Below, one piece after another: positions 3,933 through 22,004 of a stretch of 64,000 bases of DNA (its first letter is position 1; each line of letters opens with the position of its first letter). The stretch is from the sequence record ON000910.1; one strand, 5' to 3'. Under the pieces are notes generated by a model, which saw only the letters and a program-made list of their open reading frames with translations, ran no database searches and was not told the origin of the DNA. The position numbers and the translations under genes were made by a program.

Positions 3933-4082
3933 TTGATTGTATATCTTCTCGCACTAGTATTCATCGTCCTCTTTGCCTTGGACATTGAAGAAGAAAAGGT
4001 GCGCATTCATACTTTTGCGCTAATCATATGCGAACGGGTCATTCATCCCGTAAATAAAGCGCACGATTTCAGGTTGTGTTGA
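3933..4082 (+). CDS. Small putative membrane peptide (TTG start)
   Basis: GAGGTG SD 6 nt upstream; hydrophobic N-terminus IVYLLALVFIVLFAL. Confidence 0.4.
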   Translation: MIVYLLALVFIVLFALDIEEEKVRIHTFALIICERVIHPVNKAHDFRLC

Positions 4083-4403: not shown

Positions 4404-4521
4404 GGTGAAGTTAGTTCAGTAGGTTAGAACGCCGGCCAAAAAAAACGAAGTCTGATAAGATTTCATTCTGCATTCACATGCACGCCGGAGGTCGCAGGTT
4501 CGAGTCCTGCACTTCACCTTC
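4404..4521 (+). ncRNA. tRNA chimera 3: Asp-like scaffold with insert in the anticodon loop, no encoded CCA
   Basis: GTTC-AGTAGGTTA-GAAC D arm, CCGGC/GCCGG stem, T arm GCAGG-TTCGAGT-CCTGC; insert contains GAAGTC-TG-ATA-A-GATTTC-AT-TCTGCAT. Confidence 0.78.
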
Positions 4522-4528
4522 AAATTCT

Positions 4529-4653
4529 GGAGAGTTAGCTCAGTCTGGTAGAGCAAAAGAATGTTAAAGAATACTGACAAGCATTCATGCTGCAAACCTT
4601 AATAACTAGGTAAATCTTTTTGTCACGTGGTTCAAATCCCGTACTCTCCACCA
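4529..4653 (+). ncRNA. tRNA chimera 4: scaffold with AAAGA/TCTTT anticodon stem enclosing a 54-nt expanded loop
   Basis: GGAGAGT/ACTCTCC-ACCA, GCTC/GAGC D arm, TTCAAAT T loop; insert contains GAATAC-TG-ACA-A-GCATTC-AT-GCTGCAA. Confidence 0.78.
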
Positions 4654-6540: not shown

Positions 6541-6656
6541 AGTCGGGTAGCTCAGTGGTAGAGCACGAAGAATGATACTGACAAGTATCGCTCCAGCACT
6601 CCTTCAATTGCCTGTTAAGCACGTGGTCGCTGGTTCGAATCCAGCCCCGACTACCA
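6541..6656 (+). ncRNA. tRNA chimera 5: Asn(GTT) scaffold with 41-nt insert in the anticodon stem
   Basis: Removing 6568-6608 gives CGTGC-CTGTTAA-GCACG and a 75-nt cloverleaf with ACCA; insert contains TGATAC-TG-ACA-A-GTATCG-CT-CCAGCAC. Confidence 0.82.
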
Positions 6657-7373: not shown

Positions 7374-7450
7374 CCGTGACTAGCTCAATCTGGTAGAGTA
7401 CTCCGTTTGGGGCGGAGAAGTTAAGCGTTCGAATCGCTTGTCACGGACCA
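7374..7450 (+). tRNA. tRNA-Pro(TGG)
   Basis: Cloverleaf, loop TTTGGGG, ACCA. Confidence 0.9.
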
Positions 7451-7458
7451 GTTTTAAT

Positions 7459-7534
7459 GCCCGATTAGCTCAATTGGAAGAGCAGCGTCCTACGAAGGCG
7501 AAGGTTACAAGTTCGAATCTTGTATTGGGTGCCA
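7459..7534 (+). tRNA. tRNA-Arg(ACG)
   Basis: Cloverleaf, loop CTACGAA, GCCA. Confidence 0.9.
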
Positions 7535-7740
7535 GTTAGTGTTGTTTGATTGAAGCTCGTTTTCGCACATTCCCGAAACTGCTTCTACGATTTGATACGC
7601 TTAGGACCGTATCTCGTTAAGTACTGTCGAGATGATAGAATTTAGCGAACTTTTTCATAAATTAGTGTTTATGATGTCTTGAGCGAGTGTTAATATTAAC
7701 ACATAGAAAATGAAAACGTTAAGTTCTTCAAAATAAATTC

Positions 7741-7868
7741 AAAAAGATGTTTACAATGACGAAAACATCATGTACAATAGAGAAAAGCGAAATATCATTC
7801 AAAGCTGAATGAAAAGTTTTTCAAAAAAAGATGTTTACAACGATATAAACATCATGTACAATAGAGAA
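7741..7868 (+). promoter_or_regulatory. Two tandem near-identical T4-type early promoters
   Basis: AAAAAGATGTTTACAA-N-AAACATCATGTACAATAGAGAA at ~7741 and ~7826 (GTTTAC -35, TACAAT -10). Confidence 0.8.
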
Positions 7869-7872
7869 GAAC

Positions 7873-8091
7873 ATGAATGACATAATTAAAGATGTGTCAA
7901 AGTTGACACTGAAAGAAAACGAACGTGTAGTGTTTAGAGTTGATGTCGGTGATTTACCAGCATCGAAAGCTAATCAGTATATACAAAATTTAGTCGATTT
8001 ATTGAAAGAAGCGGGAATTACTAACTCAATTGTTATTCCGTCATCAATAGAAATTTCCGTAATCGATGAAAACGAATTAATGCGCAAGTAG
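7873..8091 (+). CDS. Small protein resembling a segment of T4-type portal (VDVGDLPASKANQY)
   Basis: ORF behind tandem early promoters; similarity to recalled portal motif FYIDVGNLP..KA.QY. Confidence 0.55.
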   Translation: MNDIIKDVSKLTLKENERVVFRVDVGDLPASKANQYIQNLVDLLKEAGITNSIVIPSSIEISVIDENELMRK

Positions 8092-8159
8092 CCCAATCTG
8101 GCAGAGGCACTGGTCTTAGAAACCAGAAGTTAAGAGTTCGAATCTCTTCTTGCGTACCA
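8082..8159 (+). tRNA. tRNA-Leu(TAG), short variable loop
   Basis: Loop CTTAGAA, 5-nt variable region, ACCA. Confidence 0.85.
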
Positions 8160-8160
8160 T

Positions 8161-8235
8161 GCACCCTTAGCTTATCAGGAAAAGCGGCGGATTGAAGTCC
8201 CGCAGTGCTCGGTTCGATTCCGAGGGGGTGCACCA
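8161..8235 (+). tRNA. tRNA-Phe(GAA)
   Basis: Cloverleaf, loop TTGAAGT, one anticodon-stem mismatch, ACCA. Confidence 0.8.
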
Positions 8236-8323
8236 TATTATAGCTTGTTTGTAAGAGTTAAATCAAGCAAGGGATTTTAGTTTTGAGTTATTTAGCAAAC
8301 GCTCTTAACGTGAAAATCAAATT

Positions 8324-8398
8324 GGGTCGTTAGTATAACGGTAGTACATCTGGCTTTTAACCAGAAGGGTGAGAGTTCGAATCTCTTGCGACCCACCA
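8324..8398 (+). tRNA. tRNA-Lys(TTT)
   Basis: Loop CTTTTAA, ACCA. Confidence 0.9.
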
Positions 8399-8409
8399 GT
8401 TTTTATAAT

Positions 8410-8486
8410 GCGTCGGTAGCTCATCATGGAAGAGCAGGGAGCTTTTAACTCTCAGGTGTCTGGTTCGAGTCCAGAGCGGCGTACCA
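8410..8486 (+). tRNA. tRNA-Lys(TTT)
   Basis: Loop CTTTTAA, ACCA; G7-G66 mismatch. Confidence 0.85.
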
Positions 8487-8549
8487 AATTAGATACATTG
8501 TGTATCGCTTTGCAAGTTAGATAGCTTGCAAATCAATATACAATTTAAT

Positions 8550-8624
8550 TCTCCCGTGGACTAACGGTAGGTCATCACCCTTTCAAGGTGAAGTGCGCGA
8601 GTTCGAATCTCGTCGGGAGAACCA
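8550..8624 (+). tRNA. tRNA-Glu(TTC)
   Basis: Loop CTTTCAA, ACCA. Confidence 0.88.
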
Positions 8625-8630
8625 TATTCT

Positions 8631-8716
8631 GGAGCGTACGTCTCAAGGTGAGACAGGGGACTGTAAATCCCTGACCCTTAACGGGTAGAGAGGTTCGATT
8701 CCTCTACGCTCCACCA
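8631..8716 (+). tRNA. tRNA-Tyr(GTA)
   Basis: Loop CTGTAAA, long variable arm, ACCA. Confidence 0.9.
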
Positions 8717-8721
8717 GTTTT

Positions 8722-8809
8722 AGCTTGCATACTGCAATTTAACTTAATCTATTGATCGCTCGGCGGGCATTGCTCAGACAGCGATAAACAGACCAAAGAA
8801 CGCAAGCTG
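8722..8809 (+). ncRNA. Stand-alone GCAA-motif RNA
   Basis: A-GCTTGC-AT-ACTGCAA ... GCAAGC-TG. Confidence 0.7.
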
Positions 8810-8818
8810 TTGAATAAT

Positions 8819-8895
8819 TGCGGAGTAGAGCAGCGGTCAGCTCGCCAGTTTCATAAGCTGGAGGTCAGTGGTTCGAATCCACTCTCACGCATCCA
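8819..8895 (+). tRNA. tRNA-Met(CAT), initiator-like D arm, irregular acceptor stem
   Basis: GAGC/GCTC D stem, loop TTCATAA, extra A in 3' acceptor strand, TCCA; lacks the GGG/CCC pairs of fMet. Confidence 0.7.
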
Positions 8896-8902
8896 AACAA
8901 AT

Positions 8903-9001
8903 GGAAGGCTTAGCCGAAAGATTCTGGGTAGCGGCAACGGTCTTGAAAACCGTCGGTCACCGGGAGGTGATGTTAGGGTTCGAATCCCTAGTCTTCCGCC
9001 A
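8903..9001 (+). tRNA. tRNA-Ser(TGA)
   Basis: Loop CTTGAAA, long variable arm, GCCA; enlarged D loop. Confidence 0.88.
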
Positions 9002-9064
9002 ATTAGTTAACCGGGAAGTTTAGTCACTTAACCGATTAACAGTGCGCTGAAATGCGCACACTTT

Positions 9065-9138
9065 AGTCCCTTAGCTCAACGGTAGAGCGTGCGACCGATA
9101 ATCGCTTGGTAAGAGTTCGATTCTCTTAGGGACTACCA
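9065..9138 (+). tRNA. tRNA-Ile(GAT)
   Basis: Loop CCGATAA (C33), ACCA. Confidence 0.85.
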
Positions 9139-9144
9139 AATTTT

Positions 9145-9218
9145 AGGGGCATGATGTAAAGGCAGCATGACGGATTCCAAACCCGTTCGTTAGAGTTCGA
9201 ATCTCTATGCCCCTGCCA
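9145..9218 (+). tRNA. tRNA-Trp(CCA)
   Basis: Loop TTCCAAA, GCCA. Confidence 0.88.
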
Positions 9219-9223
9219 GTTTA

Positions 9224-9282
9224 AGTAATCTTACAGCAAACAATACAAAACTTTTATTTGGAAAAAGCAAAAAGGATTACTG
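9224..9282 (+). ncRNA. Minimal GCAA-motif RNA
   Basis: A-GTAATC-TT-ACAGCAA ... GATTAC-TG with an A-rich loop. Confidence 0.7.
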
Positions 9283-9292
9283 TTTAAATTTA

Positions 9293-9368
9293 GGATCGCT
9301 AACTCAATGGTTAGAGTGCTCGCCTGTTAAGCGAGGAGTTCCGAGTTCGAGTCTCGGGCGGTCCGCCA
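9293..9368 (+). tRNA. tRNA-Asn(GTT)
   Basis: Loop CTGTTAA, GCCA. Confidence 0.92.
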
Positions 9369-9438
9369 AATTCGGAGAGTCACTACCGTTAAGTGTGAAC
9401 TTGAAAAAAACAAAGCAACTACTTTAAGTTGTCTTTGG

Positions 9439-9514
9439 GGAGCCGAGGTGTAAAAGGTTGCATGTCTCCCTGTCACGGAGAAGGTAGCGGGTTCGAAACC
9501 CGTCGGTTCCGCCA
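9439..9514 (+). tRNA. tRNA-Asp(GTC)
   Basis: Loop CTGTCAC, GCCA. Confidence 0.9.
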
Positions 9515-9533
9515 AAGATAATTTAAGAACAAT

Positions 9534-9607
9534 TGGGGATTGGTGTAAAGGCAGCATAACGTACTTTGAATGCGTTGGTATCAGTTCGAATCTGTTATCC
9601 CCAGCCA
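9534..9607 (+). tRNA. tRNA-Gln(TTG)
   Basis: Loop CTTTGAA, T1-A72, GCCA. Confidence 0.9.
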
Positions 9608-9615
9608 AATACCAT

Positions 9616-9732
9616 AGAGTGTTTTCAGCAAACAATTTACTAATATTCTTCTGATGAAAAGAAAAGTTCGGGGTTCGATTCCTCTTCAGTGTCGGTATCA
9701 CTGGTCTGGACGACGCTAGTAATAACACTCAG
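9616..9732 (+). ncRNA. GCAA-motif RNA enclosing a T-loop module (YrlA-like layout)
   Basis: A-GAGTGT-TT-TCAGCAA ... ACACTC-AG; internal GGGG-TTCGATT-CCTC and CAGTG/CACTG hairpins. Confidence 0.72.
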
Positions 9733-9736
9733 TTAC

Positions 9737-9811
9737 GCTCCTGAAGCATTGATGGCGATGCAGCGGTCTTGTAAACCGCAGAATTCGGTTCGATTCCGAA
9801 CGGGAGCACCA
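9737..9811 (+). tRNA. tRNA-Thr(TGT)
   Basis: Loop CTTGTAA, ACCA. Confidence 0.9.
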
Positions 9812-9836
9812 TATTGATTAGAGAGTGTTATCATGA

Positions 9837-9844
9837 TATAAATA
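9837..9844 (+). promoter_or_regulatory. T4-type late promoter
   Basis: TATAAATA upstream of 9875. Confidence 0.8.
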
Positions 9845-9874
9845 TTCATGTAACTACATTTTAGAGGTAATAAC

Positions 9875-10150
9875 ATGTCTATTAAAACATTTTCTGAATA
9901 TCTTAACGAAGCAAAGCATCGTGGGTCTGGCGTAGACACTCATGACGGGAAGATTCCGTATGTATACGCTGACAGTAAAGACGCTGCTGCATTTGCTGAT
10001 TTCGTATCGTCAATAGGTATGAAGCTTGATTCGAACGGTGAATTGAAGCTTTCTACACGAGATAAAGTACGAAAGTTCTTCTCAGAGCTTGATCAAGAAG
10101 CAACTAATTTCATGCTTCATGGCAACTTTGATATTATTGAATATATGTAA
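9875..10150 (+). CDS. Putative internal head protein
   Basis: MSIKTFSEYLNE capsid-targeting-like N-terminus; late promoter; GAGG SD. Confidence 0.62.
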   Translation: MSIKTFSEYLNEAKHRGSGVDTHDGKIPYVYADSKDAAAFADFVSSIGMKLDSNGELKLSTRDKVRKFFSELDQEATNFMLHGNFDIIEYM

Positions 10151-10531: not shown

Positions 10532-10607
10532 GCGCTGTTAGCTCAATTGGAAGAGCACGTCCCTTCTAAGGATGGGGTTATGAGTTCGAATCTCATACGG
10601 CGTGCCA
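10532..10607 (+). tRNA. tRNA-Arg(TCT)
   Basis: Loop CTTCTAA, GCCA. Confidence 0.92.
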
Positions 10608-10670
10608 TATTAAGCTCTTATCATGTGACGAATGATACTTTGCTTCGGCATATCACGAGCATGGTGAGAG

Positions 10671-10787
10671 AGACAATATACAGCAAACAATTGAAATTAC
10701 TTAAAAGAAGTGATGATCTTAACCTGGGCTGATTTTAACCTGAGCTTGCTTGGGCGCAGCTTGAAAGGAAAGATTCTCTCTGTCTAG
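10671..10787 (+). ncRNA. GCAA-motif RNA
   Basis: A-GACAAT-AT-ACAGCAAACAATT ... TGTC-TAG (4 of 6 bp). Confidence 0.6.
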
Positions 10788-10789
10788 AA

Positions 10790-11127
10790 ATAGTCAGATA
10801 GGCGCGTCGCTGAAACAGACGATATTTGCTTATTGAGAATCAATAAGCTAGTCAACTCCGATTTATGCAAAAGACGAAAAAACACTTCGGTATTGTCTGT
10901 ACTTAATTCGTCGGAAACGACACTGTAGCCGAAAGGCAAGTTTACTAACTTAGTTGTTAGTCGTGATACAGGAAGTATCATGTGGCATTATTATGAACGT
11001 TTCTAGTCATCGTCATGTAAAACAATCAAAACTAAGCAGAGGTAACAGTACCCACTATGTGGTTCCTCACTCAGACCATGAATATATGGTGTCAGCCAGT
11101 GTGCGATTAAATGAGTAATTACTGCAA
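10790..11127 (+). ncRNA. Candidate ~340-nt structured RNA with GAAA tetraloops, ending in a permuted GCAA motif
   Basis: GTCG-GAAA-CGAC, GCC-GAAA-GGC, GCTTATTG/CAATAAGC, TGATAC/GTATCA; TCACTC-AG ... GAGTAA-TT-ACTGCAA. Confidence 0.5.
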
Positions 11128-11129
11128 TT

Positions 11130-11205
11130 GGTGACGTAGCTCAAGTGGCAGAGCCACGCTTTCATACGGCGTAAGATCCGATTTCGAGTATCGGTGTCAC
11201 CTCCA
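11130..11205 (+). tRNA. tRNA-Met(CAT)
   Basis: Loop TTCATAC, TCCA end. Confidence 0.82.
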
Positions 11206-11230
11206 AATTCAAACAAAGAGGTTAAGAAGC

Positions 11231-11388
11231 ATGACTACTTTACACTAAGCAAGGGCAACATACGCGATAAGATTCGCTGTGTTGAAAATCGTCTCGCAGA
11301 AGAGACCAACCCGTTCTTTATAAGAACACTTACTGTAGAGCTTACGAATCTACGTGCAATACGTGATTTGTTCGACGCTTCAGATTAA
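11231..11388 (+). pseudogene. Frameshifted small ORF
   Basis: SD AGAGG and ATG ACT ACT TTA CAC TAA; inserting one T joins it to the open frame TLSKGNIRDK...DASD*. Confidence 0.45.
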
Positions 11389-11392
11389 CAAT

Positions 11393-11466
11393 GCGGGTAT
11401 GATGTAATGGTAGCATGACGTCCTTCCAAGTCGTTCGTCTCGGTTCGAGTCCGTGTACCCGCTCCA
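11393..11466 (+). tRNA. tRNA-Gly(TCC)
   Basis: Loop CTTCCAA, U73, TCCA. Confidence 0.9.
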
Positions 11467-11472
11467 AATTTT

Positions 11473-11546
11473 GGTCCCTTAGTATAATGGCAGTACGTCT
11501 CTTTTACACAGAGAAAGAAGTGGCTCGATTCCACTAGGGACTACCA
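11473..11546 (+). tRNA. tRNA-Val(TAC)
   Basis: Loop TTTACAC, T loop CTCGATT (C54), ACCA. Confidence 0.85.
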
Positions 11547-11569
11547 TTCTTTATGATGAGAAATAAATT

Positions 11570-11809
11570 ATGACGCCTGCATTACTTGAAACTCATGAAT
11601 ACGTAAACCACAACCAAATCGAAAAGCTACAGCAAATGGACAGACTTATGTTTGATTGTTGGCGTGCTGGGTATAAACGTGGCAAGATTTTAGAGCTTGC
11701 ATTGTCGATTGAGTCTTCAACAACCGAAGCAGACATCGAAATTTATTTCAAAAATATGTTTACAAGAGAACTATCGGCTGATAGTATCTACTTAAAGAAA
11801 ACTGTATGA
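11570..11809 (+). CDS. Hypothetical protein
   Basis: ORF between tRNAs with GAG SD. Confidence 0.6.
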   Translation: MTPALLETHEYVNHNQIEKLQQMDRLMFDCWRAGYKRGKILELALSIESSTTEADIEIYFKNMFTRELSADSIYLKKTV

Positions 11810-11961
11810 CGGAGTAGTGCTCCGACCGAATGACACACGCAAATGAGTCCGGTTGACAAACGTTATATGTCCCAAAGTATTGCAGGTAGCGACGGCGGTG
11901 TTGCTAGTAGATTTATCTATTTCTCCAAGACATAATGCAAGCTTTTAAAGTGTACTTTGGT

Positions 11962-12038
11962 GTGGCAGTGGGTGAAGTGGAAATACCCCCGGGTTGTGAT
12001 TCCGGAAGATGCGGGTTCGATCCCCGTCTGTCACCCCA
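11962..12038 (+). tRNA. tRNA-His(GTG)
   Basis: Loop TTGTGAT, C73, CCA; encoded -1 base is T, not G. Confidence 0.85.
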
Positions 12039-12050
12039 AAGTACATTTAT

Positions 12051-12124
12051 GCTCGAATCGTATAATGGCAGTATGACGGATTGCAAATCCGCAGGTCAGG
12101 GTTCGATTCCCTGTTCGAGCTCCA
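12051..12124 (+). tRNA. tRNA-Cys(GCA)
   Basis: Loop TTGCAAA, U73, TCCA. Confidence 0.9.
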
Positions 12125-12332
12125 GAAAAGACGATGCACAAGTTGGATGTGCAAAGGGGTCGGTTATGGTTCAACGCTTTATGCGTATAGGGTTAATCGC
12201 CTAGAACTGAGCATGTTTGAGTTGCTACTCACGAATGTAGTGATGAGTGCGTAAGAAGCCCGTAGCTAGTATAATGAGTTGATAACTCGGCAGCCTAGCA
12301 GTGTCGCCAACATCGACATAACGACACATAAT

Positions 12333-12409
12333 GCGCACGTGGTCCAATTGGCAGAGGCATGAGGCTTAAAATCTCAGGGATGGCGGTTCGAATCCGCCCG
12401 TGCGTACCA
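12333..12409 (+). tRNA. tRNA-Leu(TAA), short variable loop
   Basis: Loop CTTAAAA, 5-nt variable region, ACCA. Confidence 0.85.
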
Positions 12410-12524
12410 AATTCTAGCATAAGCCGCATTCTAACGAAGCTAGACTACCGCCGTTGAAAAACGGTCTCAGCCGAGCGAAAGCTGACAGGCGTTAGGGATT
12501 AAAGAGTTGCGGCAGCTTATTCAA

Positions 12525-12601
12525 GCCCAACTAGTCCAATTGGCAGAGGCGCTAGTTTCAAACACTAGATGATCCGAGTTCGAATCTCGGGTTGGGCACC
12601 A
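12525..12601 (+). tRNA. tRNA-Leu(CAA), short variable loop
   Basis: Loop TTCAAAC, 5-nt variable region, ACCA. Confidence 0.85.
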
Positions 12602-12697
12602 AATTCACTTAGCAACGCGAATCGAAAGAGAGTGGATAGACCTGCTAAGAGTCCCGCTAGGTCTTTAAATTATCTAAAGTGGATCTGCGAAGCGCGT

Positions 12698-12732
12698 GGC
12701 ACACGTCAGCAATAAGAGCAAATATGTGTCTG
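12698..12732 (+). ncRNA. Minimal GCAA-motif hairpin
   Basis: GGCACA-CG-TCAGCAA ... TGTGTC-TG. Confidence 0.6.
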
Positions 12733-12769
12733 AGCATGAGAGCAGCATGCCACTAATTGATGAGACGTT

Positions 12770-12858
12770 GGAAGCATGGTCTAAAGGTATGACAGCACCC
12801 TGCTAAGGTGTCGGACGTTAATAGCGTTCTCTGGGTTCGACTCCCAGTGCTTCCGCCA
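12770..12858 (+). tRNA. tRNA-Ser(GCT)
   Basis: Loop CTGCTAA, long variable arm, GCCA. Confidence 0.9.
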
Positions 12859-12863
12859 AATTC

Positions 12864-13122
12864 GCAATAAGACATTGTACAGCAATCATTACAAATCAAA
12901 GCAAACTTTAATAGTAATGAGGCGCACTAGCTGCTTTCTCAGTGATGACGTGAGCCTGTCGCATTCTCGTGGTAGGAAATGACCATTAAGACGGTGTTCG
13001 TACTGTCAAACGAAATAGGACTCATGCCGAATCATGGGTATTTTTCCGATGAGAAACATCGTTATAGTCAATTGAGATTTAAGGAAAGACGATAAAACAC
13101 TTCTTGAATGTCTGTGTATTGC
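12864..13122 (+). ncRNA. ~255-nt GCAA-motif RNA, last in the cluster
   Basis: GCAATA-A-GACATT-GT-ACAGCAA ... AATGTC-TG-TG-TATTGC; internal CATTAC/GTAATG, GACGGTG-TTCG-TACTGTC, CGATG/CATCG. Confidence 0.72.
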
Positions 13123-13123
13123 A

Positions 13124-13190
13124 CAAAAAAACCTGCCGTGAGCAGGTTTTTTTGTTTCTTCAAAATAAAAAGAGCCTTTCGGCTCTTTTA
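13124..13190. terminator. Two convergent terminators ending the tRNA operon and the - strand gene
   Basis: AAAAAAACCTGC-CGTGA-GCAGGTTTTTTT and AAAAAGAGCC-TTTC-GGCTCTTTT. Confidence 0.85.
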
Positions 13191-14903
13191 TCGACTAAGC
13201 ATAAACTCAACCGCAGGGGCTAAGATTGTATTGCCTGAGCTTGTTGTATAAGGCCCAAACGTATCAACTGAAAAATCATCACCATTTAAATTACGCAATC
13301 TAATGCGATAGTAACGACTTGAGTTCATATTCAGAATCGTATCAATTAGAAACATCGAACGATCAGTTTGAAGGTCATCCATTCTGAACGCTGAGGTTTC
13401 TTGAGTAAATGCTGATGCTGTTGTTGTATCAGTAGCCGCAGATTCAACCCACGCTATAATTTCAGGATCTGAACCTCCACCTGAACGGTCTATACTAACT
13501 CTTAGATTTATATGCATCGGTTTATCTTCGAGCGGTCTGAAGTTGTCGGATGTCGATGAATACTCAAACAATGCCCCTGTTTCATTTGTTGCTGAAAGTG
13601 GGATTGTACCTTCAGAACCAGTTGCATTCAATGTAAGAACGTTAGTATCAGTGTTACTTGATTTTTGGAATATGATATCTTTGTCAGATATGTACCCTGC
13701 GTCATTACTCAATTCAGAAATATTATCGCCTGCTACTAACGCGTTCGTTTCCAATGCAGTCACGCGAGTGTCCACTGCGTCTAATTCTGGTTGAATTACT
13801 ACTGACTCATCTACGAAACTTCGTATTGTCGGTTTGTTCCATGGAACTGATGTACTTGCGTTACCCCAAACTACAACATCTACATTCGGATTTCTCAATT
13901 CGACTTCTAGTACGTCCTGTGCTCTTATGTCAAACGGTGGTTCTATTAGAACATCAAATTCACCCGGCGTGACATTTATAATCTTAGTTTGGTAATATTC
14001 TATTGAATTTTTATATACGATTACATCAACTTCCCCATATGCGTTGACGAAATCAACCACGACTGAGTATAGCGTGCGATTGTTTGGCATCTGGGCGAGT
14101 TCCCAACGTGGATTTGACAGTTGTGCCGACTTGTCAGAATATTCAGCGACTACTTCTGCGGAACGAACTCTAACTATACCAGTATTTCCTTCATCGTAAG
14201 TTTGCCATAATGGATGAAAGCTTATATTGTCAATTATATTTGTGACTGCGATGTTTTGACCTGATGATGATATCTTGTGTGCATTTGCAAGATATAAGTC
14301 ACCGCTTCCCGACTGTACAGCCGCTAACGAGAATTTGTTTGGGTCATATGCTACTGGGTCGGTTGCGCCGCGCCAATAGTATGAGCTTGCACGACCTGCG
14401 AACTCTTGTACGAATACAGGTAGCCCATTTTTCAATAGCGACTTATTCCCTGAAGTAGAAAAGAACGAGTCTCTTTCTGCAATTGACGCAAATGGTGGTA
14501 TAGAACCTTCGCCTGATGGGCCAACTGGGCCCGGTATTCCCTCGACAATTCTCTGCGAAATCCACTGCGTTCCTGTGTATGTTTGTCTTTCTGCTACTGT
14601 ACCCCCGAGCGAAACGTCTTCATATACGAGGTCAATTGATGATGTAGGGTTATTGACGTAGTAAGCAACCCATGATGGGTTTGATGACGCATGAGCGTCT
14701 CTTAGAGCTATTGCTGCGTCTCTGTCTCCTGTACCTGCGTCAAATGAATTTGGAGTAATCCCAAGTGGGAATGGGGTTAATGAATCCTCTGGGATTATTT
14801 CCCATTCTTCATCCTTTCGCCCGTATAATAATCCGTTTACAGGGGCTTCTTCGATATATTGTGGTAGTGATTGCCCACCGCCGGGTAAATTAATCGAACT
14901 CAT
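13188..14903 (-). CDS. Putative virion fibre/whisker protein
   Basis: N-terminal foldon-like EAPVNGLLYGRKDEEW, short collagen-like GIPGPVGPSG, beta-rich body. Confidence 0.6.
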   Translation of the reverse strand: MSSINLPGGGQSLPQYIEEAPVNGLLYGRKDEEWEIIPEDSLTPFPLGITPNSFDAGTGDRDAAIALRDAHASSNPSWVAYYVNNPTSSIDLVYEDVSLGGTVAERQTYTGTQWISQRIVEGIPGPVGPSGEGSIPPFASIAERDSFFSTSGNKSLLKNGLPVFVQEFAGRASSYYWRGATDPVAYDPNKFSLAAVQSGSGDLYLANAHKISSSGQNIAVTNIIDNISFHPLWQTYDEGNTGIVRVRSAEVVAEYSDKSAQLSNPRWELAQMPNNRTLYSVVVDFVNAYGEVDVIVYKNSIEYYQTKIINVTPGEFDVLIEPPFDIRAQDVLEVELRNPNVDVVVWGNASTSVPWNKPTIRSFVDESVVIQPELDAVDTRVTALETNALVAGDNISELSNDAGYISDKDIIFQKSSNTDTNVLTLNATGSEGTIPLSATNETGALFEYSSTSDNFRPLEDKPMHINLRVSIDRSGGGSDPEIIAWVESAATDTTTASAFTQETSAFRMDDLQTDRSMFLIDTILNMNSSRYYRIRLRNLNGDDFSVDTFGPYTTSSGNTILAPAVEFMLSR

Positions 14904-17299: not shown

Positions 17300-17655
17300 A
17301 CGTAATTTCTGCTGCTGCAAATGCAATTAGAGTCACTTTACCAAATGGCGAAGAGAGGGATATTGTTGTTGCAGATAGCTGCCATTTTGGTCGAAACATG
17401 CAAGGCGTGTTTAAGCTATTGAAAGAACTTGGCTGTACATATGAACATCGAAGCGAACTTGGTGATCGTGGGCAGGGATTCATCAATTATTGTGGTGAAT
17501 ACTTCAATCGCGCTGATGCTTATGAACTCGCGAAAGAAAGCGGTCAACCATTCAATGATGGGTACACGCTACCAGATATTGACGGTGATGGTCGTCTGCG
17601 TCTCGATAGTTCATGCATTCGACATTTTTCAAAACCAATTAAGGAATATCTATGA
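17290..17655 (+). CDS. Conserved phage hypothetical protein
   Basis: HF..N..., QGF....G.YF.R..AY.LA..SGQ pattern. Confidence 0.65.
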   Translation: MHLNVISAAANAIRVTLPNGEERDIVVADSCHFGRNMQGVFKLLKELGCTYEHRSELGDRGQGFINYCGEYFNRADAYELAKESGQPFNDGYTLPDIDGDGRLRLDSSCIRHFSKPIKEYL

Positions 17656-17987
17656 GCAATCTATATGATATTTTAACTCAACGAGTCAAGCAGAATCGTT
17701 CAAAACGCGAAGAATTGTTCGTCGTTGAAATGCGTAAATCAATTGAGCGTAAGATCGGTGGTGTTTCGGGATTTCAGTTCCCGATTACGATTCAAGTTAA
17801 TCTTGAACGAAATGAATGTTGTGATGAAATGATGACTCTCATCAAGAGTGTCATGCGACGTGAGGGATTTCACAATTTCGATGCACAGTTCGGTCATTAT
17901 TCTGGCGACCCTCGTGATGTGAGAGACTATTCATATTCTTTTGTGAAATTGACAATTCGAGAAAATAAACAAGCGGGGTTTCAATGA
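17652..17987 (+). CDS. Hypothetical protein
   Basis: ATGA-coupled ORF. Confidence 0.65.
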   Translation: MSNLYDILTQRVKQNRSKREELFVVEMRKSIERKIGGVSGFQFPITIQVNLERNECCDEMMTLIKSVMRREGFHNFDAQFGHYSGDPRDVRDYSYSFVKLTIRENKQAGFQ

Positions 17988-18298
17988 TGCTTAGTCATGA
18001 CGAACTTTCAAAACAAATTAATCAACGAGAGCAAATAGCTCGTAAAGTTCTTAGCGAACATTATAATGGCGAGTGTGAAAAAGAATTCACACATGCAGTT
18101 GAAAACGGGGCTTTTTTCCCGATTAAAATCAAAGTACCAATTCACATTAGTGATTGTGATAAGAAAGGTTCTGGTTTCATTCGTGCATTCTTTGAACAGT
18201 ACGGCTACCGAAATTTACGCACTTGCTATGAATCTGGTGGTTATGTATCTGTTGAGATATACAAAAATGGTACGAATATCAGTCGTAATTATCGATAA
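17984..18298 (+). CDS. Hypothetical protein
   Basis: ATGA-coupled ORF. Confidence 0.65.
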   Translation: MMLSHDELSKQINQREQIARKVLSEHYNGECEKEFTHAVENGAFFPIKIKVPIHISDCDKKGSGFIRAFFEQYGYRNLRTCYESGGYVSVEIYKNGTNISRNYR

Positions 18299-18301
18299 TT
18301 G

Positions 18302-18394
18302 AAAAAAAGTGTTTACACGCATTAAAATTCGCGTATAATCACTTCATCAAAGACATTTTACAGCAATTAATTATGAGGAAATGAACAATGTCAG
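18302..18394 (+). promoter_or_regulatory. Early promoter plus GCAA-motif leader enclosing SD and AUG of the Ro60-like gene
   Basis: GTTTAC (18311)-17 bp-TATAAT (18334); A-GACATT-TT-ACAGCAA-TTAATT-ATGAGGAAATGAAC-AATGTC-AG, with ATG 18388 inside the 3' strand. Confidence 0.8.
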
Positions 18395-19824
18395 TATTTA
18401 TGAACGCAATGCAAACAAACGATTCACGCACAGCAAACGGTGCAGTTACTCACAGCACTTCAGGTAACGAGTGTCTAAACTTGTTCTTCGGTATTGCTGC
18501 TATGCGTGGCAACGATCAGTCTAAAACACTGTTCGGTCGTGCGTTTGCAGAAAACCCAGAACTAGCGACACGCATTCTTTTGTGGTCTCGTGATGTTCGC
18601 GGTGGTGCGGGTGAACGTGGTACTTTCCGTACTCTATTCACTAAACTTTGTAATGAACAGCCTGACGTAGCTCGTGCTGTAATGTCGAAAATTCCAGAAC
18701 TAGGTCGTTACGATGACTTAATTTCTGCTTTCGGTACACGTCTTGAACAAGATGCGATCACAATGTGGTCGAACGCAATTGTCAATGACAAGAATGGTCT
18801 TGCTGCGAAGTGGTTCCCACGTGAAAACAGCAAAAACGGTCATGTGTTCAAGCGCACAATCAAGTCTCTTGGCGTGACTGCGAAGCAGTGGCGTAAGATT
18901 CTGTCGCTTCTGTCTGACACTGTTGAGCAGAAGATGTGTGCGCAAAAATGGGATGCAATCGACTTCGGTAAGTTGCCTTCTGTAGCGTCTGCTCGTTATC
19001 AACAAGCATTCGGTCGTAACGCTTCAGCTCGTTACACAAGCTACATCGAGTCACTTCAAAAAGGTGAAGCGAAGATCAACGCTGGCGCATTGTTCCCATA
19101 CGATGTCGTTAAGAGCGTTAGTCACGGTAATGCGTCTGTAGCGAACGAGCAATGGAAAGCTCTGCCAAACTACATGGAAGGTTCTGATGAGCGCATCATC
19201 CCTGTTGTTGACGTGTCTGGCTCTATGAGCACGCCAATCAACGCAGGTACTGATCATTCAGGTGTGACTTGTAAGCAAGTTGCAATGTCTCTGGGTGTAT
19301 ATGTTGCTGAACGCAACGAAGGCATCTTCAAAGATCAATTCATTTCGTTCTCAAGCGACCCGCACTTCCACCAGTTGCGCGGTAGCTCATTGAAAGAGCG
19401 TCTTGATAACATGAATCGTTCAGGCGAAGACATGAGTACGAACATCGGTAAGTGCTTTGATGTTCTGCTAGAGCGTGCGAAGCGTGCAAATCTTTCACAA
19501 GAAGATATGCCAACCAAGTTGCTTATCATGAGTGACATGGAATTCGATCAAGCAAACACTGGTGGTGGTTGGTACGGTCGCGGTGAACCTGCGAACTTCG
19601 ATGCAATCAAAGCCAAGTACGCACGTGCTGGTTATGAAATGCCACAACTGGTCTTCTGGAACATTCGTGGTCGTCTTGGCAACGTTCCGGTTAAAGCTGG
19701 TGAAGCGGGTACTGCACTGGTATCTGGTTGTAGCCCATCTATCTTGACTTCACTGTTGGGTGGTGAGCTTGAGCCAATCAAGATCATGATGAAAACTGTA
19801 GGCGTCGAACGCTACAGCTTTTAA
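18388..19824 (+). CDS. DUF2828 family TROVE/Ro60-like protein with C-terminal vWA (MIDAS) domain
   Basis: T.NGA..HSTSG, RDVRGG.GER..FR, AAKW.PRE, KINAGALFPYD, PVVDVSGSM, SDMEFD, P.LVFWN motifs. Confidence 0.85.
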   Translation: MSVFMNAMQTNDSRTANGAVTHSTSGNECLNLFFGIAAMRGNDQSKTLFGRAFAENPELATRILLWSRDVRGGAGERGTFRTLFTKLCNEQPDVARAVMSKIPELGRYDDLISAFGTRLEQDAITMWSNAIVNDKNGLAAKWFPRENSKNGHVFKRTIKSLGVTAKQWRKILSLLSDTVEQKMCAQKWDAIDFGKLPSVASARYQQAFGRNASARYTSYIESLQKGEAKINAGALFPYDVVKSVSHGNASVANEQWKALPNYMEGSDERIIPVVDVSGSMSTPINAGTDHSGVTCKQVAMSLGVYVAERNEGIFKDQFISFSSDPHFHQLRGSSLKERLDNMNRSGEDMSTNIGKCFDVLLERAKRANLSQEDMPTKLLIMSDMEFDQANTGGGWYGRGEPANFDAIKAKYARAGYEMPQLVFWNIRGRLGNVPVKAGEAGTALVSGCSPSILTSLLGGELEPIKIMMKTVGVERYSF

Positions 19825-19873
19825 ATAAGTGATAAGGGCGGCATTGTGCTGCCCTTTTTTGTAAGAGGTGAAA

Positions 19874-20398
19874 ATGTTCGATTGGGAAGCGATAGAAACA
19901 GCTATCAATAACAGTCATCCAAATAGCACAATATACGTTGGGTGTGATAGTAAGCGTAAAAGTGACATGATTAGTTACGCGACTGTGATCATAATTCATC
20001 TTGAAGGTAGTAAAGGTGCTCAAGTGTTTAAAGCAGTTGAGACTGAACCTGCATACTTATCATGTAAAGATGGTATCAGAAGTCGATTGATGAATGAAGT
20101 ATACAAAGCGGGTGAAACTGCACTAATGGTTAAGCCAATGTGCGGTACTAGAGGCTTTGAAGTTCACGTTGACATCAACCCTGACCCCACACACAAATCT
20201 CACGTTGCCTATAACGAAGCTAAAGGTACTATATTGGGATATGTTGGTCAAGAGCCCGTGTTCAAACCTGATGCGTTTGCTGCGTCTTGTGCTGCTGATT
20301 ACGACGCAGTTCGAAGGGCAGATAAAATCGCTAAACGAAAAGAACTTAGACGAGCTAAACGAAAAGCAAAGAAACAAAAAACAAAAGGGCGCAAATAG
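19874..20398 (+). CDS. YkuK/DUF458 RNase H-like protein
   Basis: IYVGCDS, YATVIIIH, RLMNEV, EVHVDIN, KPDAFAASCAAD motifs; basic C-terminal tail. Confidence 0.75.
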   Translation: MFDWEAIETAINNSHPNSTIYVGCDSKRKSDMISYATVIIIHLEGSKGAQVFKAVETEPAYLSCKDGIRSRLMNEVYKAGETALMVKPMCGTRGFEVHVDINPDPTHKSHVAYNEAKGTILGYVGQEPVFKPDAFAASCAADYDAVRRADKIAKRKELRRAKRKAKKQKTKGRK

Positions 20399-20465
20399 CG
20401 CCCTTTTTTACGGCTATACTAAATACTGTCATATATTCTAATTTCACATACATGGAATAACGCTA

Positions 20466-22004
20466 ATGGCAGAATTAAGATCAACTACCGCAATCGGCGG
20501 TAAACTAGTTTGGCACGGAGGTAATTTACGATTTGACCCACAAGGTGAAACTGTTCTTTACAACGGCTACAAAATTTATACAGAACATGACAAGCCAGAC
20601 CCGCATACCGATTTAACCGAATCTGTTGTTAAGCGTGCTGGTGATTCAATGTCGGGTGAATTGAAAGTTAATGCACTCGGCGAAGTAATGAGATTTGATG
20701 GTGGTTACTCGGATGGTCAAGGTGACAATCTTGGGGGCGCTGACGCATGGATTTATATAGGTAATAATGCATATGCGTGGAATTTGAAATATCGTGGTAC
20801 TTCATCTGGCAATGACGGCAACGAATTCATGATTGAATCTGATCAATCAGGTAGATACTGGTCGTTTGATCATCTCGGTAATATGGAATATTACGATGGT
20901 TCAACTCATCGAACTATGCTGCATACCGGGAATCAGTCTTTACTTGACGGTCGATTTATAAATGCGTCTGGTGATTCAATGACGGGTGTTTTCAATACGT
21001 TGACTGCGCCAGAGACTAACGAAGGGTCTAGACAACTTCGTTTCCCTTCATCTAGACCGTGGAACTTTCAGACTCGCGGTATCGGTGCTGGGGCGGTGTT
21101 ATATCTTTCAAGTGAAAGTACCGACAAAGCATTCAAAATCGAAGATAGTAGTCAGATAACTGCATTGACAGTTGGTGTTGGTGCAAATTCATATGTGGAC
21201 GCTGAACGTGAATTGAGGGAACGAGGTAATCGAGTATTCAGCCCAAATAACAGAAACATCACTGACTCGGTTAGCACAACAAGCTCGACTGTATATGCAT
21301 CTGCGACTGCCGCTAAGACAGCAAATGATAACGCGAATACTCGTGTTCTTAAATCAGGTGATACGATGTCTGGGCATTTATTGTTTGATGTGGGATTTGG
21401 TATTCGTCGAACAAGCGAGTACTTCTTAGATTTCAATAGTACTGATATTCACATGTCATCTATCGGTGACATTACAATTGAAGCTGACTCAAACGACAAT
21501 GAAACGACTCGTCATTTGAACTTGATTGCTGGGTTAAACTCGTTGACTATTGATGGTGGTGCTCAGAACAGTGCAAGTGCATTAAAGTTCAATTCTAATA
21601 CTGTACTACACACTGGAAACTACACGACAAATCTAGACGGTCGGTACGTAAACGCCGCTGGCGACTCGATGACTGGTAACCTGACGATGAATGAAAATCT
21701 CATTTACGGTTCATCTACAAGTCGCTATCTGAAGTTAAGTAGTGACACTGAACTTGTTACTCCTGCAAGCGTGTTTATTTCAGCGGATACCGACTCTAGT
21801 AGCACTGTAGAAGCGGTTAATTTAGAAGCGGGTGTTAACATATTAAAAATCAAGTCAAACGCTGCTGCGACGCATACAGACAATATAACGTATAACGGTA
21901 GCGTAGTTCAGCACGATGGTCGAAGTGAAATGAAATTCGACGACGGTGCAGCGTCGATTGTGTATAACTCAACGAGTGAATCAATCGACTTTATTTTCTC
22001 ATAA
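20466..22004 (+). CDS. 36: Long tail fibre subunit with gp36-like N-terminus
   Basis: MAELRSTTAIGG..WHGGN..FDP.G...Y..YKIYTEHDKP matches the T4 gp36 N-terminus; V..AGDSMTG repeats. Confidence 0.7.
   Translation: MAELRSTTAIGGKLVWHGGNLRFDPQGETVLYNGYKIYTEHDKPDPHTDLTESVVKRAGDSMSGELKVNALGEVMRFDGGYSDGQGDNLGGADAWIYIGNNAYAWNLKYRGTSSGNDGNEFMIESDQSGRYWSFDHLGNMEYYDGSTHRTMLHTGNQSLLDGRFINASGDSMTGVFNTLTAPETNEGSRQLRFPSSRPWNFQTRGIGAGAVLYLSSESTDKAFKIEDSSQITALTVGVGANSYVDAERELRERGNRVFSPNNRNITDSVSTTSSTVYASATAAKTANDNANTRVLKSGDTMSGHLLFDVGFGIRRTSEYFLDFNSTDIHMSSIGDITIEADSNDNETTRHLNLIAGLNSLTIDGGAQNSASALKFNSNTVLHTGNYTTNLDGRYVNAAGDSMTGNLTMNENLIYGSSTSRYLKLSSDTELVTPASVFISADTDSSSTVEAVNLEAGVNILKIKSNAAATHTDNITYNGSVVQHDGRSEMKFDDGAASIVYNSTSESIDFIFS

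Follow-up and report, generated by a model that had tools for sequence, protein, structure and literature searches.

The stretch of DNA analysed here (64,000 nucleotides of sequence record ON000910.1, hereafter the window) contains a gene for a 478-amino-acid DUF2828/DUF7788 protein with a predicted Ro60-like fold. Its leader, a segment of 44 nucleotides (nt) at 18351-18394 that includes the ribosome-binding site (RBS), is the subject of this analysis. The leader segment is a true member of a family of non-coding RNA (ncRNA) modules, further copies of which lie elsewhere in the window, and in many phages and contigs of metagenome-assembled genomes (MAGs) this module accompanies DUF2828 genes. 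At the locus itself the following features were distinguished.

18311-18339, plus strand: T4-type early promoter GTTTAC-17-TATAAT (GTTTAC 18311-18316, TATAAT 18334-18339)
18351-18357, plus strand: 5' strand of the leader stem, A-GACATT (G18352 to T18357 paired, A18351 unpaired)
18358-18366, plus strand: spacer base (T18358; T or A, as in the ncRNAs) and motif TACAGCAA (18359-18366)
18367-18386, plus strand: variable loop of 20 nt with the Shine-Dalgarno (SD) sequence GAGGA (18375-18379)
18387-18394, plus strand: 3' strand of the leader stem, AATGTC (18387-18392), followed by A18393 and the family-conserved 3' G18394
18388-19824, plus strand: gene for the 478-amino-acid DUF2828/DUF7788 protein, Ro60-like fold (Pfam, AlphaFold (AF2) model, Foldseek)
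19834-19862, plus strand: terminator-like hairpin (19834-19856) and T run, right after the gene

Between positions 17500 and 20500 the window was 100% identical to Vibrio phage XZ1 and 99.9% identical to ValKK3, both of which are KVP40-like T4-type myoviruses. The original prediction, made from the letters of the sequence, had placed a promoter GTTTAC-17-TATAAT ahead of the gene. This was borne out: the site was the top sigma-70-like site of 17600-20500, with a score of 11/12, and it was kept in eight KVP40-like phages. The 5' end of the transcript can reasonably be predicted near A18346, and the whole region reads GTTTAC-17 nt-TATAAT-cacttcatcaa-A-GACATT-T-TACAGCAA-ttaattatGAGGAaatgaac-AATGTC-A-G. 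With a promoter of its own and a terminator-like hairpin behind it, the DUF2828 gene forms a monocistronic unit. The predicted pairing of GACATT (18352-18357) with AATGTC (18387-18392) was likewise confirmed in the sequence, with the start codon ATG (18388-18390) inside the 3' strand and the SD sequence inside the loop. The helix has six base pairs and not seven, because A18351 opposes A18393.

The same arrangement of stem and motif was found in the tRNA cluster at 4.4-12.9 kb (26 genes by ARAGORN, 29 tRNA matches by Rfam), by seeking a partner for the seven bases ahead of each TACAGCA. Every ncRNA copy in the window lies directly 3' of a tRNA gene.

12870-13114, plus strand: ncRNA-B after tRNA-Ser, AGACATT-g-TACAGCAA...AATGTCT-G (inner helix 12870-12876/13107-13113)
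10671-10899, plus strand: ncRNA-A after tRNA-Arg, AGACAAT-a-TACAGCAA...ATTGTCT-G (3' strand from 10892)
9224-9282, plus strand: ncRNA-C (short) after tRNA-Trp, AGTAATC-t-TACAGCAA...(35 nt)...GATTACT-G (3' strand from 9275)
8722-8809, plus strand: candidate further element after tRNA-Tyr, AGCTTGC-a-TACTGCAA...GCAAGCT-G (motif variant, 17.5 bits, E 0.014)

The helix of ncRNA-A is compensatory relative to that of ncRNA-B, which was conserved in 30 phage records, and the KVP40 copy of ncRNA-C carried a compensatory T-A to C-G change. The string AGACATT-N-TACAGCAA had exact copies at 18351 and 12870 and a one-mismatch copy at 10671; the expected chance recurrence of an exact 15-base string in 64 kb is about 1e-4. 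The leader helix had been described as identical to the helix that closes the RNA at 12864-13122. More exactly, it corresponds to six of the seven pairs of the inner helix of ncRNA-B, AGACATT/AATGTCT; the RNA also has an outer helix, GCAATA/TATTGC (12864-12869/13117-13122), with a terminator behind it. At Rfam gathering thresholds the window returned tRNAs only, and when 10600-13200 and the leader were scanned against Rfam by E-value, no relevant family came up. As to the candidate at 8722-8809, its stem AGCTTGC/GCAAGCT is a perfect one of 7 bp followed by G (3' strand from 8802), and its motif reads UACUGCAA.

In its general form the module consists of a stem of 6-7 bp, one base N, the motif UACAGCAA, a variable loop, the closing strand and a 3' G. 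The variants UUCAGCAA, UACGGCAA and UUCCGCAA led to the motif consensus U-N-C-N-GCAA. The leader fits this form with six pairs, G18352-C18392 as the second pair, and G18394; a single spacer base, T18358, is followed by TACAGCAA at 18359-18366, which corresponds to UACAGCAA right behind the 5' strand. Its outermost A x A opposition was also present in 3 of the 25 training members of the model described below.

Eighty viral contigs that encode homologues at 40-98% identity to the window protein were fetched. In a strict scan of these contigs (1.30 Mb), 86 elements lay on the strand of the gene versus 1 on the opposite strand. At least one element was present in 40 of the 80 loci, and in 36 an element lay no more than 1.5 kb from the gene. 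Most commonly the arrays flanked the gene directly, on its upstream or its downstream side, and the typical layout was a tandem pair of elements beginning 27-32 nt past the stop codon. Tandem elements were spaced 1-3 nt apart with sharply conserved ends (AAG...CUG-G/U), and their helices differed nearly everywhere (TGGTTCC/GGAACCA, AGGATGC/GCATCCT and AGAAAGG/CCTTTCT among others). Among 25 short elements, double changes were found at 6/7 pairs (42 cells) with 98% paired, a set that was chosen for pairing, the independent control being the strand asymmetry. Sliding the partner columns lowered the pairing from 98% to 23-53%. Three rows with misplaced 3' strands were left out of the MAFFT alignment of the short elements.

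A covariance model, R1 (consensus AAaAGGuUcCUUACAGCAA...GgAaCCUGgug), was made from 25 elements of distant phages and excludes all KVP40-like sequences and leaders. On 88 viral loci (1.42 Mb) it gave 91 matches at E <= 1, and on 80 bacterial or archaeal-MAG loci (0.52 Mb) it gave 40; all 91 and all 40 lay on the strand of the DUF2828 gene, a strand bias of 131:0 over both sets. When R1 was run on the window with filters off, the top match was ncRNA-C (9221-9285, 38.1 bits). The leader (18348-18397) ranked second with 23.5 bits and an E-value of about 2e-4, in agreement with the earlier claim that leader and ncRNAs share a motif, and no other RBS of a protein gene in the 64-kb window scored. 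The leaders of KVP40 and D525 scored lower (17.6 and 16.5 bits).

The IMG/VR database was also scanned with AAAGG-N5-TACAGCAAA, a pattern that is not conditioned on the gene. Of the 88 matches, 27 had the full architecture and 61 did not; a DUF2828 homologue was encoded in the stored stretch of 10/27 versus 2/61 (Fisher p = 8e-5). In these ten cases the gene was always on the same strand, at a distance of 98-747 nt, and several of the remaining 17 full-architecture matches sit at the ends of their loci. A separate observation concerns a contig labelled as a giant-virus MAG (IMGVR_UViG_GVMAG-M-3300027712-16_000001, L250), which carries a full element (stem, TACAGCAAA, complement and G) at about 4027-4045; no DUF2828 homologue was found in the 11 kb of this contig that were covered.

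This linkage bears on the possibility that some other factor recognises or processes the module, in which case the leader copy would direct cleavage of the mRNA or the liberation of a small RNA derived from its 5' untranslated region. Candidate factors are the RNase H-like DUF458 protein encoded next to the DUF2828 gene, a host RNase or a host RNA chaperone. The close spacing and sharp ends of the tandem elements are those that processed RNAs would have, a DUF458 gene follows the DUF2828 gene in KVP40-like phages, and in locus L052 elements lie between several open reading frames (ORFs). DUF2828 had defined the collection of loci, yet the association was also recovered in the gene-unconditioned scan; phage D479 lacks a DUF458 gene downstream, and the conservation is explicable without any nuclease. 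We consider a processing signal of this kind unlikely.

Among the Rfam families, the short elements resembled the Class I RNAs of dictyostelids (RF01414). These RNAs of 42-65 nt start with AAG and have a 6-bp stem that unites their ends, in which a fully conserved 5' G pairs with the C of 3' CUGU; a single-stranded 11-nt motif, CCUUACAGCAA, lies beside the 5' strand and the remainder is variable (PMC7919456). [quoted passage not shown] The phage module has the same architecture and the same consensus, CCUUACAGCAA. Set beside Class I RNAs, the leader shows a partial likeness: it has a 6-bp stem, the G-C pair, 9/11 motif bases (UUUUACAGCAA), a 3' end that reads CAGU and a length of 44 nt. Class I RNAs are transcribed from eukaryotic stand-alone genes with a DUSE (Dictyostelium upstream sequence element) promoter, whereas the element here is the leader of a phage mRNA behind a sigma-70/T4-early-type promoter. 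RF01414 matched below its cut-off of 41.5 bits in the window at 9225-9282 (ncRNA-C, 31.8 bits), at 11450-11506 of locus L010 (24.9 bits) and at 7450-7499, 8137-8193 and 9937-9985 of locus L052 (18-20 bits). No phage sequence reached the cut-off, and the leader itself gave no match at E <= 10. A full-text literature search for the motif letters returned nothing on phages, nor did any paper turn up that connects the motif with phages or DUF2828.

Fifteen related phages were compared, which gave eight distinct KVP40-like leaders with the promoter. In these eight, GACATT and AATGTC were invariant (6/6 each) and the motif was invariant at 6/8 positions. The segments around them varied and contained indels, with 4/12 positions invariant in the start region, 1/8 and 3/7 in the loop segments and 2/5 in the SD sequence; the spacer base varied between T and A, as it does among the ncRNAs. 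Judged by this pattern of substitutions, stem and motif of the KVP40-like leader are under selection. Phage D479 has no GACATT and a different start context, ATGAGC. It carries the element AGAAATT-a-TACAGCAC-(14 nt)-GATTTCT-g-aaa-ATG, with seven pairs (one G-U), over the GGA of the SD sequence, and this helix is a compensatory replacement of GACATT/AATGTC.

Four other lineages (L052, L077, L163 and Aeromonas phage 4_4572) have an element directly ahead of the SD sequence of the DUF2828 gene, with a gap of 2-3 nt, for instance GCAAACT-g-aa-AGGAGG in L052 and ACATTCT-g-aa-AGGAG-ttctt-ATG in Aeromonas phage 4_4572. In other lineages with upstream arrays the gap between element and SD sequence was 22-60 nt or more.

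Could the leader owe its appearance to chance, as a 6-bp inverted repeat that contains an ATG and stands beside a coincidental octamer? Finding 6 bp of complementarity in a span of 40 nt is in itself nothing unusual, and the hairpin of XZ1 is weak and lies outside the minimum free energy (MFE) structure. Against this stand the rarity of the 15-base recurrence, the E-value of the leader in the R1 search, the conservation with compensatory change and the strand-specificity of all 131 R1 matches (131/131). Chance resemblance is effectively refuted.

The leader copy could also be a relic of an ancestral ncRNA array upstream of the gene, of the type seen in Aeromonas phage 4_4572, L052 and L077, and have no regulatory role. 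Gene-adjacent arrays being the commonest arrangement, such an origin is conceivable, and phages that carry a homing endonuclease at this site have lost the hairpin and remain viable. A relic would be expected to decay; stem and motif are instead invariant amid diverged, indel-bearing flanks, and the helix of D479 is compensatory. This makes a functionless relic quite improbable.

Three further candidates at the locus were rejected. An alternative 3' partner for the stem, AGTGTCT at 18470, lies in a strongly conserved coding stretch (GNECLNLFF), for which the protein accounts. CACTTC at 18340-18345 was considered as a part of the element, as it resembles the CACTTC ahead of the 3' strands of ncRNA-A and ncRNA-B; its position is at the predicted start or ahead of it, and KVP40 and nt-1 have CATCAC instead. 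Finally, TTGCTGTAA was inspected as a T4 MotA box on the minus strand and dismissed, there being no -10 element behind it. That unrelated phages combine the same motif with compensatory helices speaks for a function at the RNA level.

The protein itself was assigned by Pfam to DUF7788 (2e-46) and DUF2828 (3e-29), not to TROVE, and its orthologue KVP40.0300 is labelled 'RNA-binding protein' in RefSeq. The DUF2828 family is abundant, with >7,000 clusters at 90% identity. An AF2 model from 31 homologues reached a predicted local distance difference test (pLDDT) score of 80 and a predicted template-modelling (pTM) score of 0.80. When this model was compared to the PDB with Foldseek, the top 10 matches were all Ro60/TROVE structures (Thermus phage phiLo, D. 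radiodurans Rsr, Xenopus and human), with 508-596 aligned columns, E-values of 1e-9 to 1e-5 and template-modelling (TM) scores of 0.48-0.59; these were followed by matches to the vWA domain only. In the model, the protein is built of a ring of alpha-helical repeats and a C-terminal vWA domain with the invariant MIDAS motif DxSxS (D275/S277/S279). A PDB sequence search and NCBIfam gave no Ro60 match for the window protein. Only the fold comparison links it to Ro60, and the earlier designation 'Ro60-like' is thus justified at the level of the fold: according to the model, the DUF2828/DUF7788 protein has a Ro60-like fold over its full length. ROT/TROVE proteins with tRNA-like partners have been described in some jumbo phages (Iyer et al., PMC7824862).

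The system resembles the Ro60/Y RNA and YrlA/Yrl ribonucleoproteins (RNPs) (PMC4201824; PMC12135203) in several respects. A Ro60-fold protein is encoded together with small RNAs, the RNA ends are joined by a stem, a conserved motif lies on the side of the 5' strand, and the long versions of the module contain tRNA-like sequence. The motif differs, being U-N-C-N-GCAA after the stem, whereas that of Y RNAs is GGUCCGA (animals) or GNCGAAN0-1G (bacteria) within the 5' strand of the stem. The protein differs as well at the level of sequence: it is DUF2828/DUF7788 by Pfam and has no sequence-level match to solved Ro60 structures. Rfam found no Y RNA or YrlA match (RF00019, RF02553) in the window; the best related YrlA match was at 9815-9925 of L052 (38.2 bits with E 3e-6, against a cut-off of 69). 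This segment is one of the long elements that enclose tRNA-like sequence (GCTCAGTTGGTAGAGC-type D-arm), others being at about 11911-12530 of locus L031 and about 9286-9400 of locus L067. Going by their sequence, the long elements appear to be analogues of Y RNAs that have another protein-binding motif. No description of Ro60 autoregulation, or of a leader copy at a Ro60 gene, was found in the literature searched.

The original prediction had held that the motif sequesters the SD sequence and the AUG. As bare RNA the XZ1 leader hairpin had a stability of -2.7 kcal/mol and a pair probability of 0.44 and lay outside the MFE structure, and the folding z-score of the leader was +0.55. The hairpins of KVP40, nt-1, D525 and F86 were in the MFE structure with pair probabilities of about 0.9 or higher (outermost pair 0.66-0.76), and in 1.081.O the pair probability was 0.23. 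According to work of de Smit and van Duin, hairpins limit initiation only when they are considerably more stable than -2.7 kcal/mol. Sequestration of the RBS by RNA alone was therefore rejected. Since the hairpin is too weak alone, sequestration would need the protein.

We propose that the leader (18351-18394) is a minimal, cis-encoded copy of the module, placed at the 5' end of the Ro60-like gene's early mRNA, in which the RBS would take the place of the variable loop, with the SD sequence in the loop and the AUG in the 3' strand. As long as the protein is scarce, the hairpin would be marginal and ribosomes would initiate freely. When free protein accumulates, it would bind the stem and UACAGCAA as in its ncRNA partners. 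The bound protein would clamp the hairpin and occlude the 30S site, resulting in autogenous translational repression. The ncRNAs from the tRNA cluster would compete for the protein, so that its synthesis would track the unoccupied RNA partner. Autogenous repression titrated by the ncRNAs is the reading with the best support, and we give it a slightly better than even chance; the binding of the protein, the repression and the titration are all inferred.

Autogenous operators that mimic the ligand of the repressor are well known from the E. coli ribosomal proteins L1, S8, L20 and S15, from the thrS operator with its likeness to tRNA-Thr, from T4 gp32, gp43 and RegA, and from the coat-protein hairpin of MS2; T4-like phages reuse this logic. 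The likeness here consists of a small, weak hairpin that overlaps the gene's own SD sequence and AUG and resembles a putative RNA partner, with partner RNAs that could compete. The leader element overlaps the SD sequence (loop) and the AUG (3' strand), the D479 element lies over the SD sequence, and the leader resembles the ncRNAs that co-occur with the DUF2828 gene. That these ncRNAs are ligands of the protein we infer from the linkage and from the analogy to Ro60. The protein is different from those of the known systems, being a Ro60-like ring/vWA protein, and its binding and repression are proposals from sequence. The competition would recall CsrB and CsrC, sponge RNAs with many copies of a motif that titrate CsrA from mRNA leaders: in both cases many RNA copies of a motif vie with an mRNA leader for one protein. 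The CsrB/CsrC sponge governs many mRNAs, whereas in the window only the protein's own mRNA bears the motif.

The Ro60-like protein might also bind the leader for a purpose other than repression, such as loading of the newly made protein onto RNA in cis, protection of the mRNA 5' end against decay, or activation of translation through remodelling of the leader. The family membership and the conservation of the leader fit this equally well. The element lies about 5 nt from the predicted 5' end, so that a bound hairpin could block 5'-end-dependent decay, and Ro60-family proteins are known as RNA chaperones and quality-control factors (PMC4201824, PMC12135203). In D479 and the four other lineages, however, the element is kept on or beside the SD sequence and not merely at the 5' end. 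Moreover, the stem contains the AUG and the closed loop the SD sequence, and to our knowledge every known operator with this geometry (MS2 coat, T4 gp43/RegA) represses. Binding without repression is in our judgement fairly unlikely.

Several observations weigh against repression through the leader. The seventh stem pair is absent, though a synonymous change of UCA to UCU would make one in XZ1, D525 and F86. The leader of 1.081.O has AACAGCAA, without the near-invariant U of the family. Phages VH1_2019, CZ01 and D482 have lost both stem strands while the protein and the ncRNAs, including ncRNA-B, are retained; their leader reads ggagc-t-TACAGCA-ATG, in which the motif TACAGCAA abuts the AUG, and the hairpin is thus dispensable. 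Most of the distant homologues have no leader copy, and their elements lie just downstream or further upstream of the gene. The expectation that the leader motif would be conserved upstream of DUF2828 homologues therefore stood for the KVP40-like phages and, as an element 2-3 nt before the SD sequence, for the four other lineages, and failed for most distant homologues and for the three phages with a homing endonuclease. In L052, elements also lie 13 and 27 nt before two other ORFs, and the proximity to an RBS may in this locus come partly from compact packing. Lastly, the sole demonstrated direct binder of Class I RNAs is Rnp1A/CIBP, an RNA recognition motif (RRM) protein (PMC7919456).

Ahead of the DUF2828 gene of L052, six elements (7449-9988) are interspersed with small ORFs. 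The start codons at 7515, 9573 and 10001 each follow the end of an element, at distances of 13, 27 and 13 nt, respectively. These elements could form a small regulon or could simply be intercistronic ncRNAs. An array of at least seven elements (21-43 bits) was observed at 2374-3348 of L283, which is Aeromonas phage 4_4572 (NC_048773.1), a cultured Lahexavirus. It lies immediately upstream of the DUF2828 gene, with the last element 2 nt before AGGAG, and makes this phage a convenient second experimental system.

The three phages without the hairpin carry a gene for a GIY-YIG homing endonuclease on the opposite strand, at 855-1490 of L003 (VH1_2019), 875-1486 of L004 (CZ01) and 9364-9990 of L088 (D482). 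The insertion lies exactly between the upstream gene and the start of the DUF2828 gene, where it replaces the promoter and the 5' stem strand and keeps TACAGCAATG. The first codons are changed in these phages (MTSLF versus MSAF). The endonuclease may use the conserved leader element as its target in homing.

Some neighbouring features were also noted. The promoter spacer (18317-18333) contains an inverted repeat, which was present at the same place in KVP40, nt-1, D525, F86 and 1.081.O. Its sequence changes among the phages while its self-complementarity is kept (ACGC/GCGT, CACGG/CCGTG, ACGGGTTT/AAACCCGT and CATGA/TCATG), and its minus-strand reading was scored as a terminator-like hairpin with a T run behind it. 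After the Ro60-like gene, at 19868-20398, lies a gene for a 176-amino-acid RNase H-like protein (PF04308/DUF458, YkuK-type). A DUF458 gene was found 3' of the DUF2828 gene in all six KVP40-like phages whose downstream region was examined, and was absent in D479; its product is a possible nuclease partner of the RNP. In the tRNA cluster, three Rfam tRNA matches of 113-122 nt were not called by ARAGORN (4405-4518, 4529-4650 and 6541-6653). The first two have intact acceptor, D and T arms and about 45 nt in place of the anticodon loop, and matches of this kind could be intron-bearing tRNAs or tRNA-like RNAs.

RNAs with the stem and CCUUACAGCAA occur in KVP40-like vibriophages, in the Aeromonas Lahexavirus and in many marine and gut phage contigs, while Class I RNAs are reported as confined to dictyostelids (PMC7919456). 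Tentatively, and with less than even confidence, we suggest that these RNAs are one ancient RNP class of phages and dictyostelids with DUF2828 as partner, of which the KVP40-type leader would be the first autoregulatory, Y-RNA-like operator of the Ro60 family. The regulatory logic is classical (ribosomal proteins, threonyl-tRNA synthetase, T4 gp43/RegA, MS2 coat), and the literature searched contains no account of a Ro60-family protein that has a Y-RNA-like operator. An abundant phage protein family that travels with a Class I-like RNA family, unmatched above threshold in Rfam, appears to be new, and this linkage of protein and RNA family is a wider and more important lead than the leader itself. 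If the proposal is true, the Ro60 family, whose roles in bacteria and phages are poorly understood, would gain a simple built-in feedback circuit that can be tested with an RNA of 45 nt. As a minimal module of stem, spacer and UACAGCAA, the rest being RBS, the leader points to what the protein probably recognises. Since 2004 it has been asked what Class I RNAs do and which proteins partner them, and the link to DUF2828 could connect the two fields.

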